The notes under the pieces were generated by a model. That model searched no databases. It was not told the origin of the DNA and saw only the letters and a program-made list of their open reading frames with translations. A stretch of DNA of 64,000 nucleotides from Ylistrum balloti (lineage: Eukaryota), in NCBI RefSeq assembly GCF_031769215.1, contig NW_026782083.1, forward strand, positions 1,364,001-1,428,000. Reading direction: 5' to 3'. Both the position numbers and the translations under genes were made by a program. Position 1 is the first letter of the stretch. Each line of letters starts with the position of its first letter. This document shows positions 1 through 57,600 of the stretch, one piece after another.

Positions 1-916
1 TGAATTGCTCACCTGTTCTGCAGCCCTTGGTAACACTTAAGGTTTAGTAGCCCTTCATCTGATGCTACAGACTCAGTATAAGTGTCAAGGATAATTTTAC
101 TACAGTGTAATGAAAAAGTGTTTGAAGATTTCAACATAACTGACCCCAGTGACTTTGAAAGTGGGGTCAAGGTCAAATGTGGAAGTAGCAGTACCCTGGG
201 CCTTTTCCTTATTGAGAAAGGTAATTTCAAAATTTTAAAACACAACCCTATACGACCTTAAAAGTGGGCCAAGGCCATTCACTTGAACAAACTTTATAAC
301 TTGTCATTCCAGCATGCTACAGGTCAAAGATCAGTATTCTGGGCCAACACATGTTTTAGGCAGGTGAGCTAATGAATGAAATTGAAATTGTAAATTACCA
401 GGTTTCATTTTTTAAGTTCCTGGTGACTGGTGTTTATAATTGTCTCCTATGTCAAGGGAAATCTGACCTGCATTATACAAGATTTCAGACATGAAAGGTA
501 TAGGGTCATCTGCTTGACCACATGGGAATTCCCACGCACTTCAGTTTCCTTCCACAGAAAGATTTCTTGTACACTTCCATTCAGGCCAACAAGAGTGATT
601 AATTTAAGATGGAATAACTGGTTTCGCAATTGTTGTAAAATAAATGAAGTTTGATTTTTAAATTTCACCAGATTTCATTTTTCAGTCCTGGTTACTGTAG
701 ACTTTATAACTGTCTCCTTCACTAAGTGACATTAAACCTTTACCTTCCTGGTGACCATTTGGTGTATTTATGTGTCCCCCTGATCTTTGTCTGTTAATGA
801 AGTTATAGACATTTTAACCTTTATCAGATACCATACTTCAATATTTACATAATGAAGAAATTACCCAATTCCTGGACAGCAGTACGTAACTTTAACATGG
901 TATAGTGAATCCTTAC

Positions 917-44556: not shown

Positions 44557-46255
44557 ATTCCAGGTATAAGCACTGTATCAACTTAAGTATTGTGTATGTG
44601 CAATAGGAAAGTTCACTGCGATATGTCATGAGCTGTTGTCAAGGAGAGTACATTGTACAAGCATTGTTAGCTTAACAATACTTATTGGTGTATTTTCCAT
44701 GTTTTCATTTGTATAAACTTAAAGTTATGATTTCAAACTTTCCTTCCAATCATATGTAACATTTCATGAATCTGAAAATTAATTTAACTTTAAACTTTGA
44801 ATTTTGACCAGGCAATTTTTGTAACGAACCTACGTCATGGAATGACATGTTCTCACAACTTTTACTACTCATACACATTTAATGTAATGAGGGACTACAA
44901 TGGTGAGCGCGTCTCCAAATGTTTACACGTTTACACGTGCTTAAGATAATTTTAAGTCATTGGTATAAAGCCATTAATTTATTTCCCTAAGTGCATGGTA
45001 GTACTCTTATTTTCCAAACTGTACTGGGCTATATAATTAAGGAAAACTGAAATAAAGACAGAATGATAATTGTATGGGACCATTTGCCTGACATCAATGT
45101 GTATCAGTACCCCGATCTATTATTTTTTATTTATTTATTTTTTTTATTGGGAGGGGGAGCTTAAGACACAAGTACATAAATTTTTCTCTGGGTTTCTACT
45201 TCCTTCCCACACTACATTTTTTCTCTGGATTTTGTGACATACTGCCATCTTATATGACCCTAATTGGGACAAGGATATACAATTTCCCAATTTCCAATAA
45301 GCATTAAAACACCATTTTATCAGGAAATCTCCTAAAATTTGTTAATTTGAACTAAATTTGACCTGTTATGTCCTTGTGCCATTGATTGAAGTTGAGTTGA
45401 TTGTATCAGTCCTATCCATGCTGTGCAGTCATCCAGTTATCATTCTTAACAAAAACTCATACAATCAGGACCATATCAGAAAGTTCTTCATAAAAGTTTG
45501 ACACACTAGCTCCATCTATGTATAGATAGTGATGAGGACAAAGTCAGGACTCTTCTTTGTTGTATATTTAATATCAAATCATTCCTTAAATGCTTGGTTT
45601 AATACTTGACTTCACAATGAATAAAGGGATGTCCTATTTTGAAAACTCTACTTTGACAAATGATATGAATAATTCCAATGTACATATTTTTTCTACTAAT
45701 CTCTTTCAAACTTTACAGATTTAATCACAATAGAATGATTTATGTGTTTCACAAACAGAGTTTTGCTTAACAATCTGTTTAGCTCACATGGCACTTTGTG
45801 CCAGTGAGTCCATGGTATGGTGAAGGATCTGTTGCTTGTTATCAGTCTGTCTGTCAACTTTCTTTAAGAAATCTATAAGCAACTAACACCTGATATTTAG
45901 TCAGGATGTTCCTGGGTTAGAGTATGATGTACTTTCCTCATATTATTAACCTAGACCTATTTCAAGGTTACAAGTGTCAAATATTTTAAAAACTTCAAGG
46001 ATCTTCTTTTCAAGTTCCAGAACATCTGGTTCACTGATATTTGGCCAATGTGTACCTGATTTGGGTGCAACAAAGTTTCCTTGTATCAATGACCTTGACC
46101 TATTTTCATAGGTAAAGTTGGTTATTACCAGGTACATGTATAATATATTCAACACTACGAGATGGTAATTTGTAGTTAAAAGATATTGTTTAAACATCAT
46201 CTGTTCTTTATGTGATATTGTAATATAATCTGATCTTTAATATGTCAGAGCAAAC

Positions 46256-49200
46256 ATGCCAACAAATGGAGACTTTACCCTGTCAATACGAGTAGGAGAC
46301 ACCACCCTGCCAGAGTACAACAAAGATAACATCTGTTATGTAGAGAGCAACTTCTTCACACCATTCAGCTACCAACACGAGTATTCCGAGATTATCCACG
46401 GTGAAAATGAAATGCAGGTATGATCACTTGAATGAAAATGTCAGGGTGACACTAGTTTGGGTTTTTTTTTTTTTGATGAAAAATTTAGAGTGGCCACCAC
46501 AATGTGATTTTCTGGAAAACCTCGGGTATGGCCACAGAGTGATTTTAATGAAAAACTTGGGTATTACCGTTAAGTGATTTTGTTAGTTACATCCAACCAG
46601 AAGTTGACTTTGTAGTTAATTCAAAAGTTTTGGAAGTTTTAAAAGTGATAAAGAAATATCTGAACTAGTTTTGGGGAAATGTTTGAAGGGTATAATATCA
46701 GTATTTCAGTGAAAATTTCACCATTAGAAATGTTTACAAATCCCCCACTGAATTGAACATCTACAGAAGAGCAAATATTTTTTGGAATATCGAATAGAAT
46801 TCTTAAAAAGAAAATAAATTCCTTATTTTATACCTTCTTTTGAGACTGCCTAAAATTCTTTCCCTTTAATTAGTGTTTAAAGTTCACTAGTGAGTTAATC
46901 TCTACATTAGAGAAAACTTACATGGCAGATGTGTTACATGTCTGCAATATGGATGTCAATGCATTTCTGTTAATTAAGAAATTAAGTCTGTGTTTTCATT
47001 TTCAAGAAATGGCCTGTGACACCATTTGTGATTGCTATTTATGGGAAAGACACCATTCAACATTCATATTATCATGTGTTCGTGGATGGTCAGCTTGTCA
47101 AGAAGATTAGTGTTGCTCCAGGAAAGACCAGGTATAAAGATTGAGGGCTCTTTACTATCAGCTTTAGAAATTGGAATCAATAACTTTATGAGAATCCTGA
47201 TATTGTGGATTGTCAAGTTTGTAGTATGTAACTCAGCACTCATTTTTCACAAGACTTTCATTTTCTTTGTTGATGCTTTTAAACTTTTTAGTTCAATTTT
47301 GTTTTGGTGTGATAGCTGGTTTTTGTGTCCTGTGTAAATGTCGCAGTATGCAATCCCTTACTTGCACAGTTAATTTTTTCCCCAAAAAATCTTTTTCTTC
47401 CTGTACCACATCTACAACAGATTTTTCTTGGGGCTGTGAAAATTTGCGGACATAAACATGTTGAGCCAGACAGGTACATACTTGTTTTGGGGTAAATGGA
47501 CTTTTTTTGTTGTACAATATGGTCCTTGGTTTATATTTTTGTTTTCTTTGTCATAACTTCATCAATTTCAAACTTTGGCTTAATATAACTAGCTTATACA
47601 TTTTGTATGTTTATCTAGACTACAACAATTGATTGCAACGTTACTGTGTTAGATAATAAGACATTGAATGAACAATTAGATCTATAAGATTACAATCATA
47701 GACATACCAGTTTTACTCTCAAATGTGCTAAATTGTTTTTATGATACATGGAAAAATAATAATGATATTAACGAATAAAAAAACAAATAAAAAGACACTG
47801 AATATTTTCAACTATTTATATCTTAATTACTTTTTGTAGGCTTGTGAGAGGATTTCGAGATGGGAATAATTGTGTGGAGTTCCTGTTTTCCTTACCAAGG
47901 TTCTGTCGGGGAGAGGTTTGTATGTCTCTCTGTTGTCTCCCCTATCTCAAGTCAAACACTTCAGGGAAGTAGACACTATATTACAACTTGCACCTGAAGT
48001 CAAACATCCCTGTGAAGTAGATTCCATATAGAGCTGCCTCCCACACCACAGATAAAACATCTGAGGGTTGTAAACCCTGTGTTGTTCTTTTGCTGTCTTC
48101 ACCACTTTTTGTCAAACATCTGTGTTCAGAAAATTTAGTGTCTCTTAGCTGTACATTATACTCCAGTGCTATCAGAATGCTGACCTTTGTTGGTGAAGCA
48201 AACATCTAGCAAATGGAAGAACCAGGAAAATAAAAACCTGCAACCATACAACCAACCAATTTTACCCAACGTAAGCACCTCAGTGAAATAGATTCTATGT
48301 AATATCCCACTGCTGTTTCCCCTGTATAATATATTGTTTTTTAAAAGTTTCACCTACCCTAAGTAGTGTAGTAGTTTGTTTGTCCATCAATGGTTTCTGC
48401 TCCGCCATCAGATAAACACCACTGTTACATTGTATGTATCTATGTTATATCCCTACACAATCTAACCATTAAAAAAGGAGTGCTTGTAAAATCCAGTCTT
48501 AGAAGGGATATTTGAGTAGAGTGTACAACCATTGTTATGATGAGATAGACTTACAGAGGACTATTATATGTTTAACAGGTTCACCTAAAATTGACATGAA
48601 AGTTCAGTAGAGCCATTTGCCATTGTCAGATAGTGAACTGTACAAACCACCTTTTCTTTGTGATCCATCTTTCTTTAAACAATTCCTGTTAATACTATTT
48701 CTTCAGAAGCACTGGATGACTTATATATATATTTTTTTAAGTTGTTCCCCTTGGTCCATAGTTGTGACTATTTGACATTGGGACTGATCTGAAAATTATT
48801 GTGGCTGAAACGTAGCCACCTTGGATTTTAACAATAATAGTAAGATGGCCGAGGAGCAGCCATCTTTATTTTTGGCAATTATAACTTGTTATTGTTATTT
48901 CTGGAGAAGTACTTGATGGATTGTTCCCAAATTTCATATGTAAGTTTCCTCTGGTCTCTTGTTGTACCGTTTTGATTATAGATCAGACCAGCAAAACAAT
49001 CTTGCTGACAGGCAGCCATATCTGGATAGATCTTTCGCAAATGTCATTTGAAGGTTCCTTTTGATCCCTAGTTTTGTTAAAGTGAAAATTTGTTTGCATG
49101 ATTTCTTTGTAAGTACTAAACGGATAATTGTTAGATCTCATAAATAGGCTCTGTTAAAGGCTGACCAGAAAACACAAAATTGCAGATGGGAAGCCATCTT

Positions 49201-52014
49201 GGATTTGACAACTAAAGATCATAGGAGGAATTTGAAAATTTAATATCATAAAAGAGGTGGAAACAATACAACTTTTTCAGTACAAATAAATATCAAACAA
49301 TGGTAGGAGCCAACATCTCTATAGGATATCTTTTTCATGACAAAGAACATTTATCACAGTGAGGAAAGCAGTGTAATTTTGGGAATGGAATTCAGTCTAG
49401 CATGAGCATCTGTTTCGTGTTAAAAGTATTGTCAAGATAAATTTGAAAAAAATACAACTATACTAGTGTATCTCTGGCCTATTTGTTAGATAACTAGATA
49501 CTACAGGAACTGTAACATATCAAATTTGTACTCTTGCAGAATGACAAGCTTGCATCAGATCAGGTTTCCAGAGTTGGTCTTATTGAAGTAAAGTGCTATG
49601 AGGCAGTGAAGAGGGCTTCATTCGTGACAAGAAGAAAGAGGGATCTCCTCTTTGACCAAGCTAACAAGAAGGACTGTACTGATGTGACACAAGGTATTGT
49701 GAATGGGTTGGTTGCTATTGGGCATTGGCTTTATGTGCAGAGTGTTCTTGTCATTTGAATTAGTACTTTTTATCCCTTTTAGTCTTATTCAAATCTCTTT
49801 GCGTCAGTGGTCTGTCCATCTGTAAACCATTTTTGTTATCACTATTTCTTGAGATGTACTGGATGGATTTTTCTCAACTTGCATACATACTCTCCCCTTG
49901 GTCCCTAGTTATGCCCTTTTGATTTTGAGCCTGATCAAAAAAATAAAATTGCCGAAATGCGTCCATCTTGGATTTTGACTTTGAAAGTTTGGTATTGCTA
50001 TTTCTTGAGAAGTGTTTGATGGATCTTTCTTAAATTTCAGATGTAGGTTCCCCTTGGTCCCTAGTTGTGCCCATATATTTTTGGGACTCATCAGAAAAAA
50101 ATGTCCAGAAGGGGGCCATCTTGGATTTTGACTTTGAAAGTTTGGTATTGCTATTTCTTGAGAAGTGTTTGATGGATCTTTCTTAAATTTCAGATGTAGG
50201 TTCCCCTTTGTCCCTGGTTATGCCCATTTGATTTTGGACCTGATAAAAATCAAAATGGCTGACATGCAGCCATCTTGTTTTTTAACTTTGAAAGTTTGTT
50301 ATTGCTATTTCTTGAGAAGTACTGAATGGATATCTTTCAAATTTCATTTGTGTTTCCATTGGTCTCTTCTTTCACTTGTTTGATTTTTGGATTGATCAGG
50401 AGAAACAAAATGGCTTCCAGGTGGCCATTTTGGATTATCATCACTTTCTGCAAAGGAATCTTTAAATGTCTTAATCATTTAGAGCAAAAACAGAAAAGAC
50501 AAGAGCAAACAGGGAAAAGATTCAACATTCAAAGAGCATATAAAGATCAAACAATGGTGGACACCAAGATCTCTCTGGGATCTCTGGTTGTACTTTGTTT
50601 TTTATACTTGTATGTTTGTACACAGGCTGGTGGATTTGAGTGTTTGCTGACATCTATGTATGAATGTATATTTGTAAGCAAACACATGGATGTGTATGTG
50701 TATTGGCATGTTTATATATAGAGAGGTACATTTGTATGTGTTCTGGAATGTTTGGATATAGAGAGGTACAGACTAGTGGATATAGAGAGGTACGGACTAG
50801 TGGATTTGTATGTGTACCAGCATGGTTTGTATATAGAGAGGTGCAGACTAGTGGATTTGTATGTGTACCAGCATGGTTTGTATGTAGAGAGGTGCAGACT
50901 AGTGGATTTGTATGTGTACCAGCATGGTTTGTATATAGAGAGGTACGGACTAGTGGATTTGTATGTGTACCAGCATGTTTGTATATAGAGAGGTGCAGAC
51001 TAGTGGATTTGTATGTGTACCAGCATGTTTGTATATAGAGAGGTGCAGACTAGTGGATTTGTATGTGTACCAGCATGTTTGTATATAGAGAGGTGCAGAC
51101 TAGTGGATTTGTGTGTGACCTAGCATGTTTGTATATAGAGAGGTACGGACTAGTGGATTTGTATGTGTACCAGCATGGTTTGTATATAGAGAGGTGCAGA
51201 CTAGTGGATTTGTATGTGTACCAGCATGTTTGTATGTAGAGAGGTGCAGACTAGTGGATTTGTGTGTGACCTAGCATGTTTGTATGTAGAGAGGTGCAGA
51301 CTAGTGGAGTTGTATGTGTACCAGCATGTATGTATATAGAGAGGTGGAGACTAGTGGATTTGTATGTGTACCAGCATGTTTGTATATAGAGAGGTGCAGA
51401 CTAGTGGATTTGTATGTGTACCAGCATGTTTGTATGTAGAGAGGTGCAGACTAGTGGATTTGTGTGTGACCTAGCATGTTTGTATGTAGAGAGGTGCAGA
51501 CTAGTGGAGTTGTATGTGACCTGGCATGTTTGTCTCTTGAATATGTATGAAGACTAGCAAGTTTTGATATTCAGAATGGTACTTTCATAAGAAGGGAGTA
51601 TGTAGGGGTTACTCTATTGTAGGGGTTGAAGTTCTTTACATCAATTAGTCAGTTTTTTGTTTTAACTCATTTGACATCAGGAATTCATCACATTTCATTC
51701 CAGGTAAATACCTGATGGTGACCACCAAGGCAGGCAAGGTCCTCAAGAAGCGTGCTACCAACAAGATGACTGACCACTGGGATGTAATCAGAATGCGCAG
51801 TGCCCAGAGCGTAAAATATGTGACCTCACAGACCTTAATTGACCTTGGAATCTCTGTCATCCCCATTCCTTTCCCTGCAAATCAAAACATTGCCTCTAAC
51901 AAAAGTACAGAAACAAGTATCAAACAGGAAGCAGCTACTCAACTGATAAAGCAGGAAATCCAGGACCCTGCTGGGACTTTGGTCCCAAGCTCACGTGTGA
52001 AATTCCTGGTTTGA
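46256..52014 (+). CDS. Uncharacterised 275-aa protein, DUF7918-like (assignment from recalled motif pattern)
   Basis: Coding exons 46256-46417, 47007-47131, 47840-47915, 49540-49693, 51704-52014; all GT-AG; phases 0,2,0,1 join into one 828-nt frame: MPTNGDFTLSIRVGDTTLPEYNKDNICYVESNFFTPFSY...QKWPVTPFVIAIY...YHVFVDGQ...RGFRDGNNCVEFLFSLP...VGLIEVKCYEA...ANKKD...KYVTSQTLIDLGI... Confidence 0.8.
49835..50445. repeat. ~154-bp satellite-like unit x4 in an intron, probably the central array of a HINE-like element
   Basis: CCATCTTGGATTTTGACTTTGAAAG anchor at 49963, 50116, 50270, 50425; related copies at ~48850-49215 and 19200-19600. Confidence 0.85.
50690..51535. repeat. 50-51-bp minisatellite x~15-16
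   Basis: TAGAGAGGTGCAGACTAGTGGATTTGTATGTGTACCAGCATGTTTGTATA unit; it explains ORFs 50664-51038. Confidence 0.95.
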
Positions 52015-52239
52015 ATGATAAGTTCGTAAACTTGCATATATTCATTTTGACACATGTCATTCTCATCTTCCATTTTCCAGTACACAGATGTTTATATCCT
52101 ATCATAAAATTTTGAAACCTTCATTTTCTGCTATGTTTGTTTGATATTAAAATCTAGTCATATTTGTTTGTAGGTTTATGTGCTCATGTTTGTCATCGTG
52201 TATGTAAATAGTAATGAGTATATGTTTGTTTAATAATGA

Positions 52240-52830
52240 TTGTCACAATGTGCAGGCAGTTGAAAGTGTAATAAGCATTGTGCAGGCATTTGAATGTGTA
52301 ATAAGCGATGTGCAGGCATTTGAATGTGTAATAAGCAATGTGCAGGTAGTTGAAAGTGTAATAAGCAATGTGCAGGTAGTTGAATGTGTATTAAGCAATG
52401 AGCGGCAGTTGAATTTGTAATAACAATGTGCATGCAGTTGAATGTGTAATAAGTAACTTGCAGGCAGTTTAATGTGTAATAAGCAATGTGGAAGCATTTG
52501 TACGTGTAATAAGTAATGTGCAGGCATTTGTGTGTGTAAAAAGCAATTTGCAGGCATTTGAATGTGTAATAAGTTATGTGCAGGCCTTTGAATGTGTAAT
52601 AAGCAATGTGCAGGTAGTTGAATGTGTAATAAGTAATGTGCAGGCATTTGTGTGTGTAATAAGTTATGTGCAGGCATTTGTGTGTAATAAGCAATGTGCA
52701 GGCATTTGAATGTGTAATAAGCAATGTGCAGGCATTTGCGTGTGTAATAAACAATGTGCAGGCATTTGAATGTGTAATAAGCAATGTGCAGGCATTTGAA
52801 TGTGTAATAAGCAATGTGCAAGTGTTTGTA
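52240..52830. repeat. 30-bp minisatellite x~20
   Basis: TGTGTAATAAGCAATGTGCAGGCATTTGAA unit; it explains the VISNVQAFEC-type ORFs. Confidence 0.93.
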
Positions 52831-54695: not shown

Positions 54696-57600
54696 TCACT
54701 GTCCATTAAGTTTGGCTGGGTCACCAAGTGTAGCATCCCAGATTTTCATTTTGTCTGCACCAACAGTGCTCTTTGTTTTAGTCCATTTATCAGCAGATTT
54801 ATCTCCATGGGGAACACCGAACATAGCGTCGCCAAGGTCCGAGCTTAACTCAGCCAATATCTTAGGATCTTTGTAGTGTGTTACAGCTTGAGCCATGGCA
54901 ACTGCACGTTTGGCCGGATTTGAACTTTTGAAAATTCCTGATCCTACAAATACACCATCGACACCAAGCTGCATCAGGAGAGAAACATCGGCTGGAGTGG
55001 CTACAACAGAGACACCAAATGTTAATACAAGATTTACAACACAGTCATAGACTTCTTAATTTACTTACATTAATTAAAAAAATTGGCATAGCTATTATTT
55101 ATTTTACAAATTTGAGGTTCATTTCTAATATATTTGACAGAAGGAAGTTGATTAGTGATAAAAAGACAGGACATGGTACAATTGACTGTATATTTACAGG
55201 ACTGAGAGAAGCTGATTAGAGATAAAAAAGACAGGACATGGTACAATTGACTGTATATTTACAGGACTGAGAGAAGCTGATTAGAGATAAAAAGACAGGA
55301 CATGGTACAATTGACTGTATATTTACAGGACTGAGAGAAGCTGATTAGAGATAAAAAGACAGGACATGGTACAATTGACTGTATATTTACAGGACTGAGA
55401 GAAGCTGATTAGAGATAAAAAGACAGGACATGGTACAATTGACTGTATATTTACAGGACTGAGAGAAGCTGATTAGAGATAAAAAGACAGGACATGGTAC
55501 AATTGACTGTATATTTACAGGACTGAGAGAAGCTGATTAGAGATAAAAAGACAGGACATGGTACAATTGACTGTATATTTACAGGACTGAGAGAAGCTGA
55601 TTAGAGATAAAAAAGACAGGACATGGTACAATTGACTGTATATTTACAGGACTGAGAGAAGCTGATTAGAGATAAAAAGACAGGACATGGTACAATTGAC
55701 TGTATATTTACAGGACTGAGAGAAGCTGATTAGAGATAAAAAGACAGGACATGGTACAATTGACTGTATATTTACAGGACTGAGAGAAGCTGATTAGAGA
55801 TAAAAAGACAGGACATGGTACAATTGACTGTATATTTACAGGACTGAGAGAAGCTGATTAGAGATAAAAAGACAGGACATGGTACAATTGACTGTATATT
55901 TACAGGACTGAGAGAAGCTGATTAGAGATAAAAAGACAGGACATGGTACAATTGACTGTATATTTACAGGACTGAGAGAAGCTGATTAGAGATAAAAAGA
56001 CAGGACATGGTACAATTGACTGTATATTTACAGGACTGAGAGAAGCTGATTAGAGATAAAAAGACAGGACATGGTACAATTGACTGTATATTTACAGGAC
56101 TGAGAGAAGCTGATTAGAGATAAAAAGACAGGACATGGTACAATTGACTGTATATTTACAGGACTGAGAGAAGCTGATTAGAGATAAAAAGACAGGACAT
56201 GGTACAATTAACTGTCTATTTACAGGACTGAGGGAAGTTTATACCTAAGCCCCCTGCTGCAAAATTGACGACAGGAAGTCTCCCCAACTCTGCAGTTTTT
56301 TTCAGCAGCTCATGTGGCACACGAAGTTCCTTGGCATAGTTGTATAATTCTGTTGAGTCCATGGCACTTGCTGTCTTGATCTGTTTGTTGATTGTTCTGG
56401 CATGTTTCACAGCTTCAGAAACATCCCCTGTGTAAGATACAAGATGACTAAAAATGGAATTTCTGGTGCTGATGAAGATTTATAGAATCTTACATGGGTC
56501 TGTTCCACAGACAAGGATAAAGCAAAAATCTGTAATTTGTTATGAAGCATTCTCATCACATCATCACCATTAGCAACGAAATGTGTATCAAAATTTATGA
56601 CATCAATTTGTGACACTTATGCCACACAAAATGATGATGCTACCCCATTGTGAGTCATATAAAATCACTTTGATTATTTGCTTGATAATAAACTTAAGTA
56701 GACGAGCTGGATCAGTCTTGTTCATGTTACTATCATAACACTACTGATTCATACCAGTTCCTGCTTCCCCTTTTGTCCTGATCATGGCAGCTCCTTCTGA
56801 AATTCTGCGTAATGCTTCACCAAGATCACGGGCTCCACAAACAAATGGCACTTCAAAATTGTGTTTGTTGATGTGGTTCACCTCATCTGCAGGTGTTAAC
56901 ACTGCAACAATACATGATGTAGTGTTTAAATAGCACGAAACAAAGCGTTGTCCTCAACAGTGGTTGAAAATACATGTTATTGTCATTGTGAGGTTCCATA
57001 CACAAGCTTCAATCTCGCAAGATTACAAAATCAATCTTAAGAATTTTCCGTTGTCCAACACATTTTCTAAACATAGAGACTATCACTATCAATTTTAATT
57101 TCAATCTGTTATTTTTCAAAGTTCAGATGCATACGATTAAAATTTTTCAAAATCGGTCCGTGGTGGGCTCTTACACAAACTGTACAAAACACAGGAAAAA
57201 GACTAGAGACATGGATATTTTGTTTGAGTACTGTCAAATTAAAAATAATTTCTAAAAATTTCTAACCACAATCTTTTTAAATACCTTCTGATTCATCTAC
57301 CATGTCCACCCCAAGAGCTTGAAGAATCTGAGCCTCTGCAAAATGACCAATTCTTGATTTGGCCATTACTGGGATAGTCACTGCTGCAATTATTCCCTTT
57401 ATCTTCATTGGATCAGTCATTCTAGCCACGCCCCCTTCTCTTCGTATATCAGCAGGGACACGCTCTAGTGCCATGACAGCACATGCCTGAAATTGTCAGA
57501 AAGTATATTAACAGGCAAATATCAAATAAGTGCCCAAATATCTGCCTTTGTTTGCTTCAAAAATTACACAGGATTTAGTGTAAACTTTCCCCAATCACTT

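Follow-up and report, generated by a model that had tools for sequence, protein, structure and literature searches.

Does the plus strand of a scallop genome hold, at positions 46256-52014 of the stretch analysed here, a working gene, and what might its protein do? The stretch, called the window throughout, comprises 64,000 nucleotides of Ylistrum balloti (NCBI RefSeq assembly GCF_031769215.1, contig NW_026782083.1, positions 1,364,001 to 1,428,000). A preliminary description had proposed that five short exons at this locus form a hidden gene for an uncharacterized protein related to DUF7918, a mainly fungal domain. We find an intact, conserved and already annotated gene, LOC132548414, which encodes a soluble protein, and we are practically certain that this is a real functional gene. 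The best overall explanation, to which we assign a rough probability of 0.6, is that a DUF7918-like beta domain would act as a binding module, with control exerted through a tail that carries motifs of the small ubiquitin-like modifier (SUMO) type.

The five exons (Table 1), reproduced at exactly the coordinates proposed before, splice into a stop-free frame with a total coding length of 828 nt, i.e. 275 codons plus stop, as determined by sequence reading and by script. All four introns are of the GT..AG type with a pyrimidine-rich tract before every acceptor, the GC content amounts to 41-47% in the exons versus 30-38% in the introns, and the region 45800-52500 is free of N stretches. Exons 1, 2 and 3 sit within open reading frames (ORFs) of only 55, 42 and 42 aa, so that an ORF list with a 60-aa limit would lack them, in line with the absence noted before. 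All motifs quoted from the translation (LPEY, CYVES, VDG, FLFS, IEVK, RRKR, KKR and two copies of IKQE) are present. The gene is not hidden from annotation, however, because the public 275-aa entry "uncharacterized protein LOC132548414 [Ylistrum balloti]" (P0075) agrees with the translation of every exon at 100% identity. The split codons AG/G and G/GT yield Arg96 and Gly173, both as in this protein. The entry and the window gene are thus the same gene without any difference, and orthologues are annotated in many molluscs.

Searches were run exon by exon and then with the public protein. In a phmmer search of exon 1 against 1.84 billion representatives, 46 matches were obtained, the genuine ones being proteins of 250-540 aa whose first residues are Met-Pro and which are similar to residues 1-54 of the scallop protein. 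The matches also include many ORFs of exon size on genomic contigs; their similarity ends at residue 54, as expected if the first intron is conserved. The best full-length match, used in turn as the query of a word-index search, retrieved named orthologues, including P0075, and each exon singly matches orthologues of other species (BLASTP E 1e-13 to 1e-41). When applied to the 648-Mb assembly, a family profile that included P0075 itself recovered exactly the five exons at this locus.

Support for transcription in Y. balloti is missing, as the sole public run that holds the stretch is a DNA run, and the introns are full of repeats. Both facts would suit a non-working locus, be it an open frame that arose by chance, a pseudogene in decay or an ORF of transposon origin. 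We nevertheless regard such a locus as effectively excluded: none of the five exons is damaged or differs from the RefSeq model, and orthologues extend from sponges to hemichordates. The closest relative of non-scallop type, P0005 (60-65% identical), is encoded by an uninterrupted coding sequence (69-902) on a Logan contig of 1077 nt, which leaves no room for introns in this sequence, and it aligns without gaps across all four junctions; several further orthologues lie on contigs of 1.0-2.9 kb. The scallop gene is under purifying selection, with a nonsynonymous divergence (dN) of 0.235, a saturated synonymous divergence (dS) of 1.63 and a dN/dS of 0.14 (Nei-Gojobori per exon, pooled, against the P0005 complementary DNA). 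Neither the multiple copies nor the domains of a transposon-encoded protein were found, since the 648-Mb assembly contains one copy each of exons 1 and 5, with a divergent paralogue as the sole other locus, and Pfam scans of the exons and of P0075 detected no transposase, reverse-transcriptase or integrase domain. The paralogue has equal intron positions, hence it is no retrocopy.

The contigs of the DNA run continue through the introns with about 1.6% difference; no splice joints lie over the exons, and the joints present, in introns 3 and 4, are driven by repeats. In the contig of the other individual, C stands for T at position 46413, which changes Met53 to Thr. Residue 53 is also Thr in Pecten, Mizuhopecten and P0005, so that the assembly has the derived Met53 allele. 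A second difference, T to C at 47111, is synonymous.

Judged by sequence, the scallop protein belongs to an animal family without a Pfam model, here named 'MP-LPEY-YVES', whose hallmarks are a Met-Pro start, WPVTP, VDG, EFLFSLPRF, QANKKD and TTK.G within a full-length collinear similarity. Over the whole domain, the protein is 68-77% identical to those of other scallops and 31-52% to those of other phyla, and identity is still 31-45% out to sponge and hemichordate proteins. The named orthologues reach profile E-values of 1e-98 to 1e-126; among them are LOC117335672 of Pecten maximus, LOC110441277 of Mizuhopecten yessoensis, LOC127738543 of Mytilus californianus, LOC133187100 of Saccostrea echinata, LOC102802113 of Saccoglossus kowalevskii and Em0022g134a of Ephydatia muelleri.

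Members occur in scallops (Pecten, Mizuhopecten, Argopecten, Ylistrum), other bivalves (mussels, unionids, one oyster and one ark clam), gastropods (abalones, Gigantopelta), one nemertean (Lineus), one annelid (Dimorphilus), two hemichordates (Saccoglossus, Glandiceps) and sponges (Ephydatia, Geodia). More divergent relatives, 290-520 aa long, were recovered from plankton data sets, Tara among them, and from a Tribonema transcriptome. No vertebrate, arthropod or nematode member was named in the word-index searches, which is an absence of matches and not proof of loss. The patchy distribution suggested previously is borne out. The gene is an old eukaryotic one, retained in sponges, lophotrochozoans and hemichordates, with divergent relatives in marine protists, whereas the common model animals yielded no member. 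In the databases, its products are called 'uncharacterized' or are misnamed for their acidic tail (HMGN5-like, dentin sialophosphoprotein-like). None of the family members carries a precomputed Pfam domain, exon-by-exon Pfam scans of the window gene gave no match, and we found no paper that mentions DUF7918, PF25534 or the LOC numbers. The earlier description of the protein as uncharacterized thus stands. Met1-Pro2 (46256-46261) is invariant: the paralogue has it, and so have all full-length relatives, protists and molluscs included; the proline would be N-terminal after methionine removal, and a structural role or a signal such as a Pro N-degron are both conceivable.

Some phmmer matches were rejected as relatives. 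The giant proteins P0001, P0002, P0004, P0006 and P0043 (1,271-3,791 aa) ranked at the top because their large scores are summed over up to 17 repeats. P0001, the only one of them that was scanned, is a bacterial-type SprB-repeat protein, and each of its repeats aligns to about 35 residues of the N-terminal hairpins, at 33-42% identity and with a score of only 20-25 bits. Two such hairpins, formed by residues 3-38 of exon 1 (46262-46369), resemble the repeats of the giant multi-repeat proteins, with G14, Y21, D24, Y28, S31, N32, F34 and T35 among the common positions. As the Pfam SprB model does not match exon 1, this likeness is judged to be a convergent beta-hairpin pattern. P0040 was discarded as translated repeat junk.

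An AlphaFold2 model, built from a 54-sequence alignment, reached a mean predicted local distance difference test (pLDDT) score of 85.7 and a predicted template modelling score (pTM) of 0.80. In this model, residues 1-235 are predicted to form a single all-beta domain, an Ig-like sandwich core with long hairpins, which includes very long strands (50-67, 135-152 and 192-212) and three short helices. The P0005 model shows the same topology. The protein is soluble and intracellular and lacks a signal peptide and membrane segments. If the domain were an Ig-fold DNA-binding one of the p53, Rel or Grainyhead kind, the protein would be a SUMO-regulated transcription factor. The structural match to such domains is, however, no better than that to 40 unrelated sandwiches, no DNA-binding family was detected by sequence, and most of the conserved residues are acidic or neutral, not basic, which makes this possibility very unlikely.

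The resemblance to DUF7918 proposed in the preliminary description stands as a remote similarity, and falls as Pfam membership. No Pfam family other than PF25534, the model of DUF7918 (228 positions; gathering cut-off 27 bits), recurs among about 85 members scanned; it matches 2 of 19 members in batch A1, 3 of 39 in batch A2, 7 of 20 in batch A4 and 3 of 10 in the batch of divergent members. In about a quarter of the members scanned, the alignments are collinear within profile positions 2-226, and across independent members they consistently cover most of the profile (examples in Table 1). Among the neighbours in the ESM Atlas, where scores of at least 0.9 occur by chance in 4-10% of shuffles, PF25534 is carried by 28 of 30 for P0075 and by 26 of 30 for the divergent P0213. 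The PF25534 clusters found there (Basidiomycota) score 0.91-0.93 and have 196-211 of 256 features in common with the query; the top match is a Mucoromycota cluster (0.94), and a diatom cluster is also near (0.90). Within these PF25534 clusters only 25-34% of the members pass Pfam, which indicates that the model is narrow. The word-index searches, the last of them at E up to 10, yielded further divergent members of the animal family; neither they nor the search of representatives brought up a fungal DUF7918 sequence.

We therefore call the gene "DUF7918-like" only, and consider a remote DUF7918 kinship likely, in view of collinear sub-threshold alignments and of DUF7918 as the dominant protein-language-model neighbour of the animal family. 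The animal branch differs by its Met-Pro start, by WPVTP, EFLFSLPRF and QANKKD, and by the psi-K-x-E and h-x-h-h-D motifs of its tails. Kinship transfers no mechanism to the scallop protein, because the function of DUF7918 itself is unknown. A PF25534 scan of the scallop's own genome matched only a minisatellite of about 20 bp (locus L002, contig C201: 43618-43737), the translation of which scores a spurious 16.7 bits; this match was rejected. Six-frame searches for protein families can evidently mislead in so repeat-rich a genome.

The tail offers a second line of evidence. Outside scallops the tails cannot be aligned, short motifs excepted. Such motifs include the acceptor consensus for SUMO, psi-K-x-E (PMC8616421), and the two IKQE motifs reported earlier are both there (Table 1). 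They lie in a predicted accessible segment and are kept among relatives: family tails have IKQE, IKTE or VKSE, sponge-like members often carry IKQEPED or VKSEPED, and the scallop protein carries IKQE twice. The motif class [VILM]KxE occurs in 37 of 49 family tails, and the 47 motifs observed compare with 6.3 expected from shuffles, an enrichment that is inflated by shared ancestry.

A SUMO-interacting motif (SIM) consists of hXhh or hhXh (h = I, V, L) flanked by acidic residues (PMC8616421). The C-terminal end is exactly h-x-h-h-Asp (VIVLD, IIVID, IEIID, VEVID) in 17 of 77 members, among them plankton protists, molluscs and a hemichordate, and where these ends stand beside acidic runs they recall the C-terminal SIM of Daxx, IIVLSDSD (PMC8616421). 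SIM-type features are present in most non-scallop relatives and in the paralogue. The scallop protein retains the acceptor motifs and ends in VKFLV; it contains no hXhh or hhXh core beside acidic residues. The likeness to Daxx and to acceptor sites is one of sequence patterns only. Docking of the C-terminal motif in cis was not predicted, as AlphaFold2 leaves the end of P0005 disordered.

The family's h-x-h-h-Asp-COOH end could instead be a ligand of the carboxylate clamp of tetratricopeptide repeat (TPR) proteins, like the IEEVD-type ends of Hsp70 and Hsp90, and point to a chaperone or CHIP-type link that was lost in scallops. TPR clamps require a free terminal Asp, and where the motif occurs it is always at the very end and always has a single final Asp, a position that a SIM does not demand. 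The Hsp70 end TVEEVD, moreover, doubles as an atypical SIM (PMC8616421). On the other hand, the acidic residues at -2 and -3 of IEEVD are mostly aliphatic in the family, the internal copies that members carry before acidic runs (IDLTFDDD, VIDLTDD; IEIDDD in the paralogue) resemble ordinary SIMs, and the window gene lacks the terminal motif altogether. We thus consider a clamp ligand improbable.

Under the explanation that we prefer, a DUF7918-like binding module with a SUMO-type tail, the beta domain would bind a partner through a region centred on the near-invariant segment QANKKD...G.Y.M.TTK.GR. SUMO attached to the tail would control the location of the protein or its partners, and in most non-scallop relatives the hydrophobic-acidic motif of SUMO-interacting type at the C-terminus would add control. 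Taken by itself, the SUMO-linked part of this mechanism is tentative and rather doubtful.

Several observations weigh against this explanation, beginning with the missing RNA support. P0075 gave no match to PF25534 even at E 10, and none of the approximately 85 members reached the Pfam cut-off (best score 21.7 bits). A PDB sequence search returned no match, and a Foldseek search against the PDB nothing specific (best E 0.011, with template modelling scores below 0.2 in the best rows). Structure searches with Foldseek and VIA-align produced only generic Ig-like sandwiches (Z at most 6.2), so that the fold is uninformative on function. These Ig-like or E-set sandwiches (MSP domain, Y_Y_Y, transglutaminase C-terminal barrels, LILR Ig domains) cover less than half of the 235-residue domain, lack a counterpart of its 18-21-residue hairpins (50-67, 135-152, 192-212) and have no sequence similarity to the scallop protein, and none stands out among the matches. 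Scallop proteins end in KFLV or KFLI, not in h-x-h-h-D, and therefore do not fit the SIM consensus. RRKR and KKR, which had been taken as a hint of a nuclear protein, are poor evidence of a nuclear signal because they are located inside the folded domain at variable, poorly conserved positions. Finally, the psi-K-x-E and SIM patterns are short and degenerate. If the tail motifs were incidental, the protein could be a cytosolic beta-sandwich carrier or adaptor for a lipid tail or a short peptide, modelled on PDE-delta, UNC119 and RhoGDI or on the MSP domain that binds FFAT peptides. We consider this unlikely.

Table 1. Coordinates of the gene, its tail, the neighbouring and paralogous loci, and examples of alignments to PF25534 (window positions unless stated otherwise; profile scores are those of the family profile on the scallop's own genome).
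Feature	Position	Strand	Details
Exon 1	46256-46417	+	162 nt; ATG and 54 codons, residues 1-54; phase 0 donor CAG/GTATGA; invariant Met-Pro start, LPEY, YVES; 100% identical to P0075 residues 1-54 (BLASTP); profile score 90.6 bits
Exon 2	47007-47131	+	125 nt; residues 55-95 and two bases of codon 96 (AG/G = Arg); WPVTPF, VDG; 100% identical to P0075 residues 55-95 (BLASTP); profile score 56 bits
Exon 3	47840-47915	+	76 nt; final base of codon 96 and residues 97-121; GF..G...EFLFSLPRF; 100% identical to P0075 residues 97-121 (BLASTP); profile score 35.1 bits
Exon 4	49540-49693	+	154 nt; residues 122-172 and first base of codon 173 (G/GT = Gly); G.IEV strand, RRKR (49630-49641), near-invariant QANKKD; 100% identical to P0075 residues 122-172 (BLASTP); profile score 62 bits
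Exon 5	51704-52014	+	311 nt; remainder of codon 173, residues 174-275, TGA stop; end of beta domain (to about residue 235) and C-terminal tail; 100% identical to P0075 residues 174-275 (BLASTP); profile score 97.7 bits
C-terminal tail, predicted disordered	51892-52011	+	codons 236-275; pLDDT <50; ends in scallop-specific R-V-K-F-L-V
First IKQE	51919-51930	+	Lys246; fits the psi-K-x-E SUMO-acceptor consensus
Second IKQE	51946-51957	+	Lys255, followed by I-Q-D; aligns with the IKQEPED-type motif of sponge-like and other members
PDX1, last coding exon	54696-54974	-	identity from translation
Paralogue, exon piece	541156-541344 (contig C417)	+	profile match
Paralogue, exon piece	544089-544244 (contig C417)	+	profile match
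Paralogue, exon piece	545581-545748 (contig C417)	+	profile match
Paralogue, exon piece	548342-549145 (contig C417)	+	profile match
P0079	protein 72-188		PF25534 profile 57-188; 21.7 bits
P0161	protein 61-190		PF25534 profile 53-186; 19.2 bits
P0017	protein 60-188		PF25534 profile 40-188; 15.5 bits
P0165	protein 61-234		PF25534 profile 55-226; 13.8 bits
P0164	protein 69-235		PF25534 profile 61-225; 12.8 bits
P0156	protein 7-25		PF25534 profile 2-21; 11.5 bits

The divergent paralogue in the same genome (contig C417; loci L010, L011 and L012) has four exon pieces, which cover profile positions 1-45, 53-97, 98-121 and 178-346; an exon for positions 122-177 was not found. It shares the Met-Pro start with the window gene, its first intron contains a reverse-transcriptase fragment, and its long acidic tail is rich in SIM-like motifs (IEIDDD, VQILEEVDDD, MVDLSEDI).

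In the window, the gene lies tail-to-tail with PDX1 at the distance of 2.7 kb given previously, counted from its stop codon to the last PDX1 coding exon. This exon alone remains below the Pfam threshold, and nothing suggests a functional link of the scallop gene to vitamin B6 synthesis. Intron 4 holds, at 49746-50730, a repeat with a 153-bp unit (49842-50436), the word depth of which in the DNA run is about 24,000, compared with about 11 in the flanks. This depth marks it as an interspersed element of very high copy number, to which many false 'joints' in the read layout are due. The same intron contains a minisatellite of 15 copies of a 50-bp unit (50780-51533). Another minisatellite, with 19 copies of a 30-bp unit (52246-52820), starts 230 bp past the stop codon and is probably located in or beside the 3' untranslated region.

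A wider reading, which we consider speculative and unlikely as it stands, would place the scallop protein in the animal branch of a beta-sandwich superfamily that is ancient, spans the eukaryotes and was lost in vertebrates, insects and nematodes. The protein would serve the SUMO pathway as a reader or adaptor, and no solved structure would be related to its fold. Such a superfamily would comprise fungal DUF7918, Mucoromycota, diatom and plankton clusters, and animals from sponges to hemichordates. If this is true, the family escaped study because of its loss from vertebrates, insects and nematodes, and the tail code of psi-K-x-E plus terminal h-x-h-h-D marks a previously unrecognised SUMO reader or adaptor.

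Our results leave the genome annotation unchanged, since the model is already in RefSeq. They link to DUF7918, within limits, about 100 proteins of animals and protists that have no Pfam domain and are either misnamed or listed as uncharacterized. They also supply a confident structure prediction for the domain, to which no solved structure is specifically similar. The conserved short motifs, of SUMO-acceptor type and with a fixed hydrophobic-Asp end, make this unstudied family cheaply testable. The scallop gene and its relatives are, furthermore, an example of an old gene that is missing from all main model animals.

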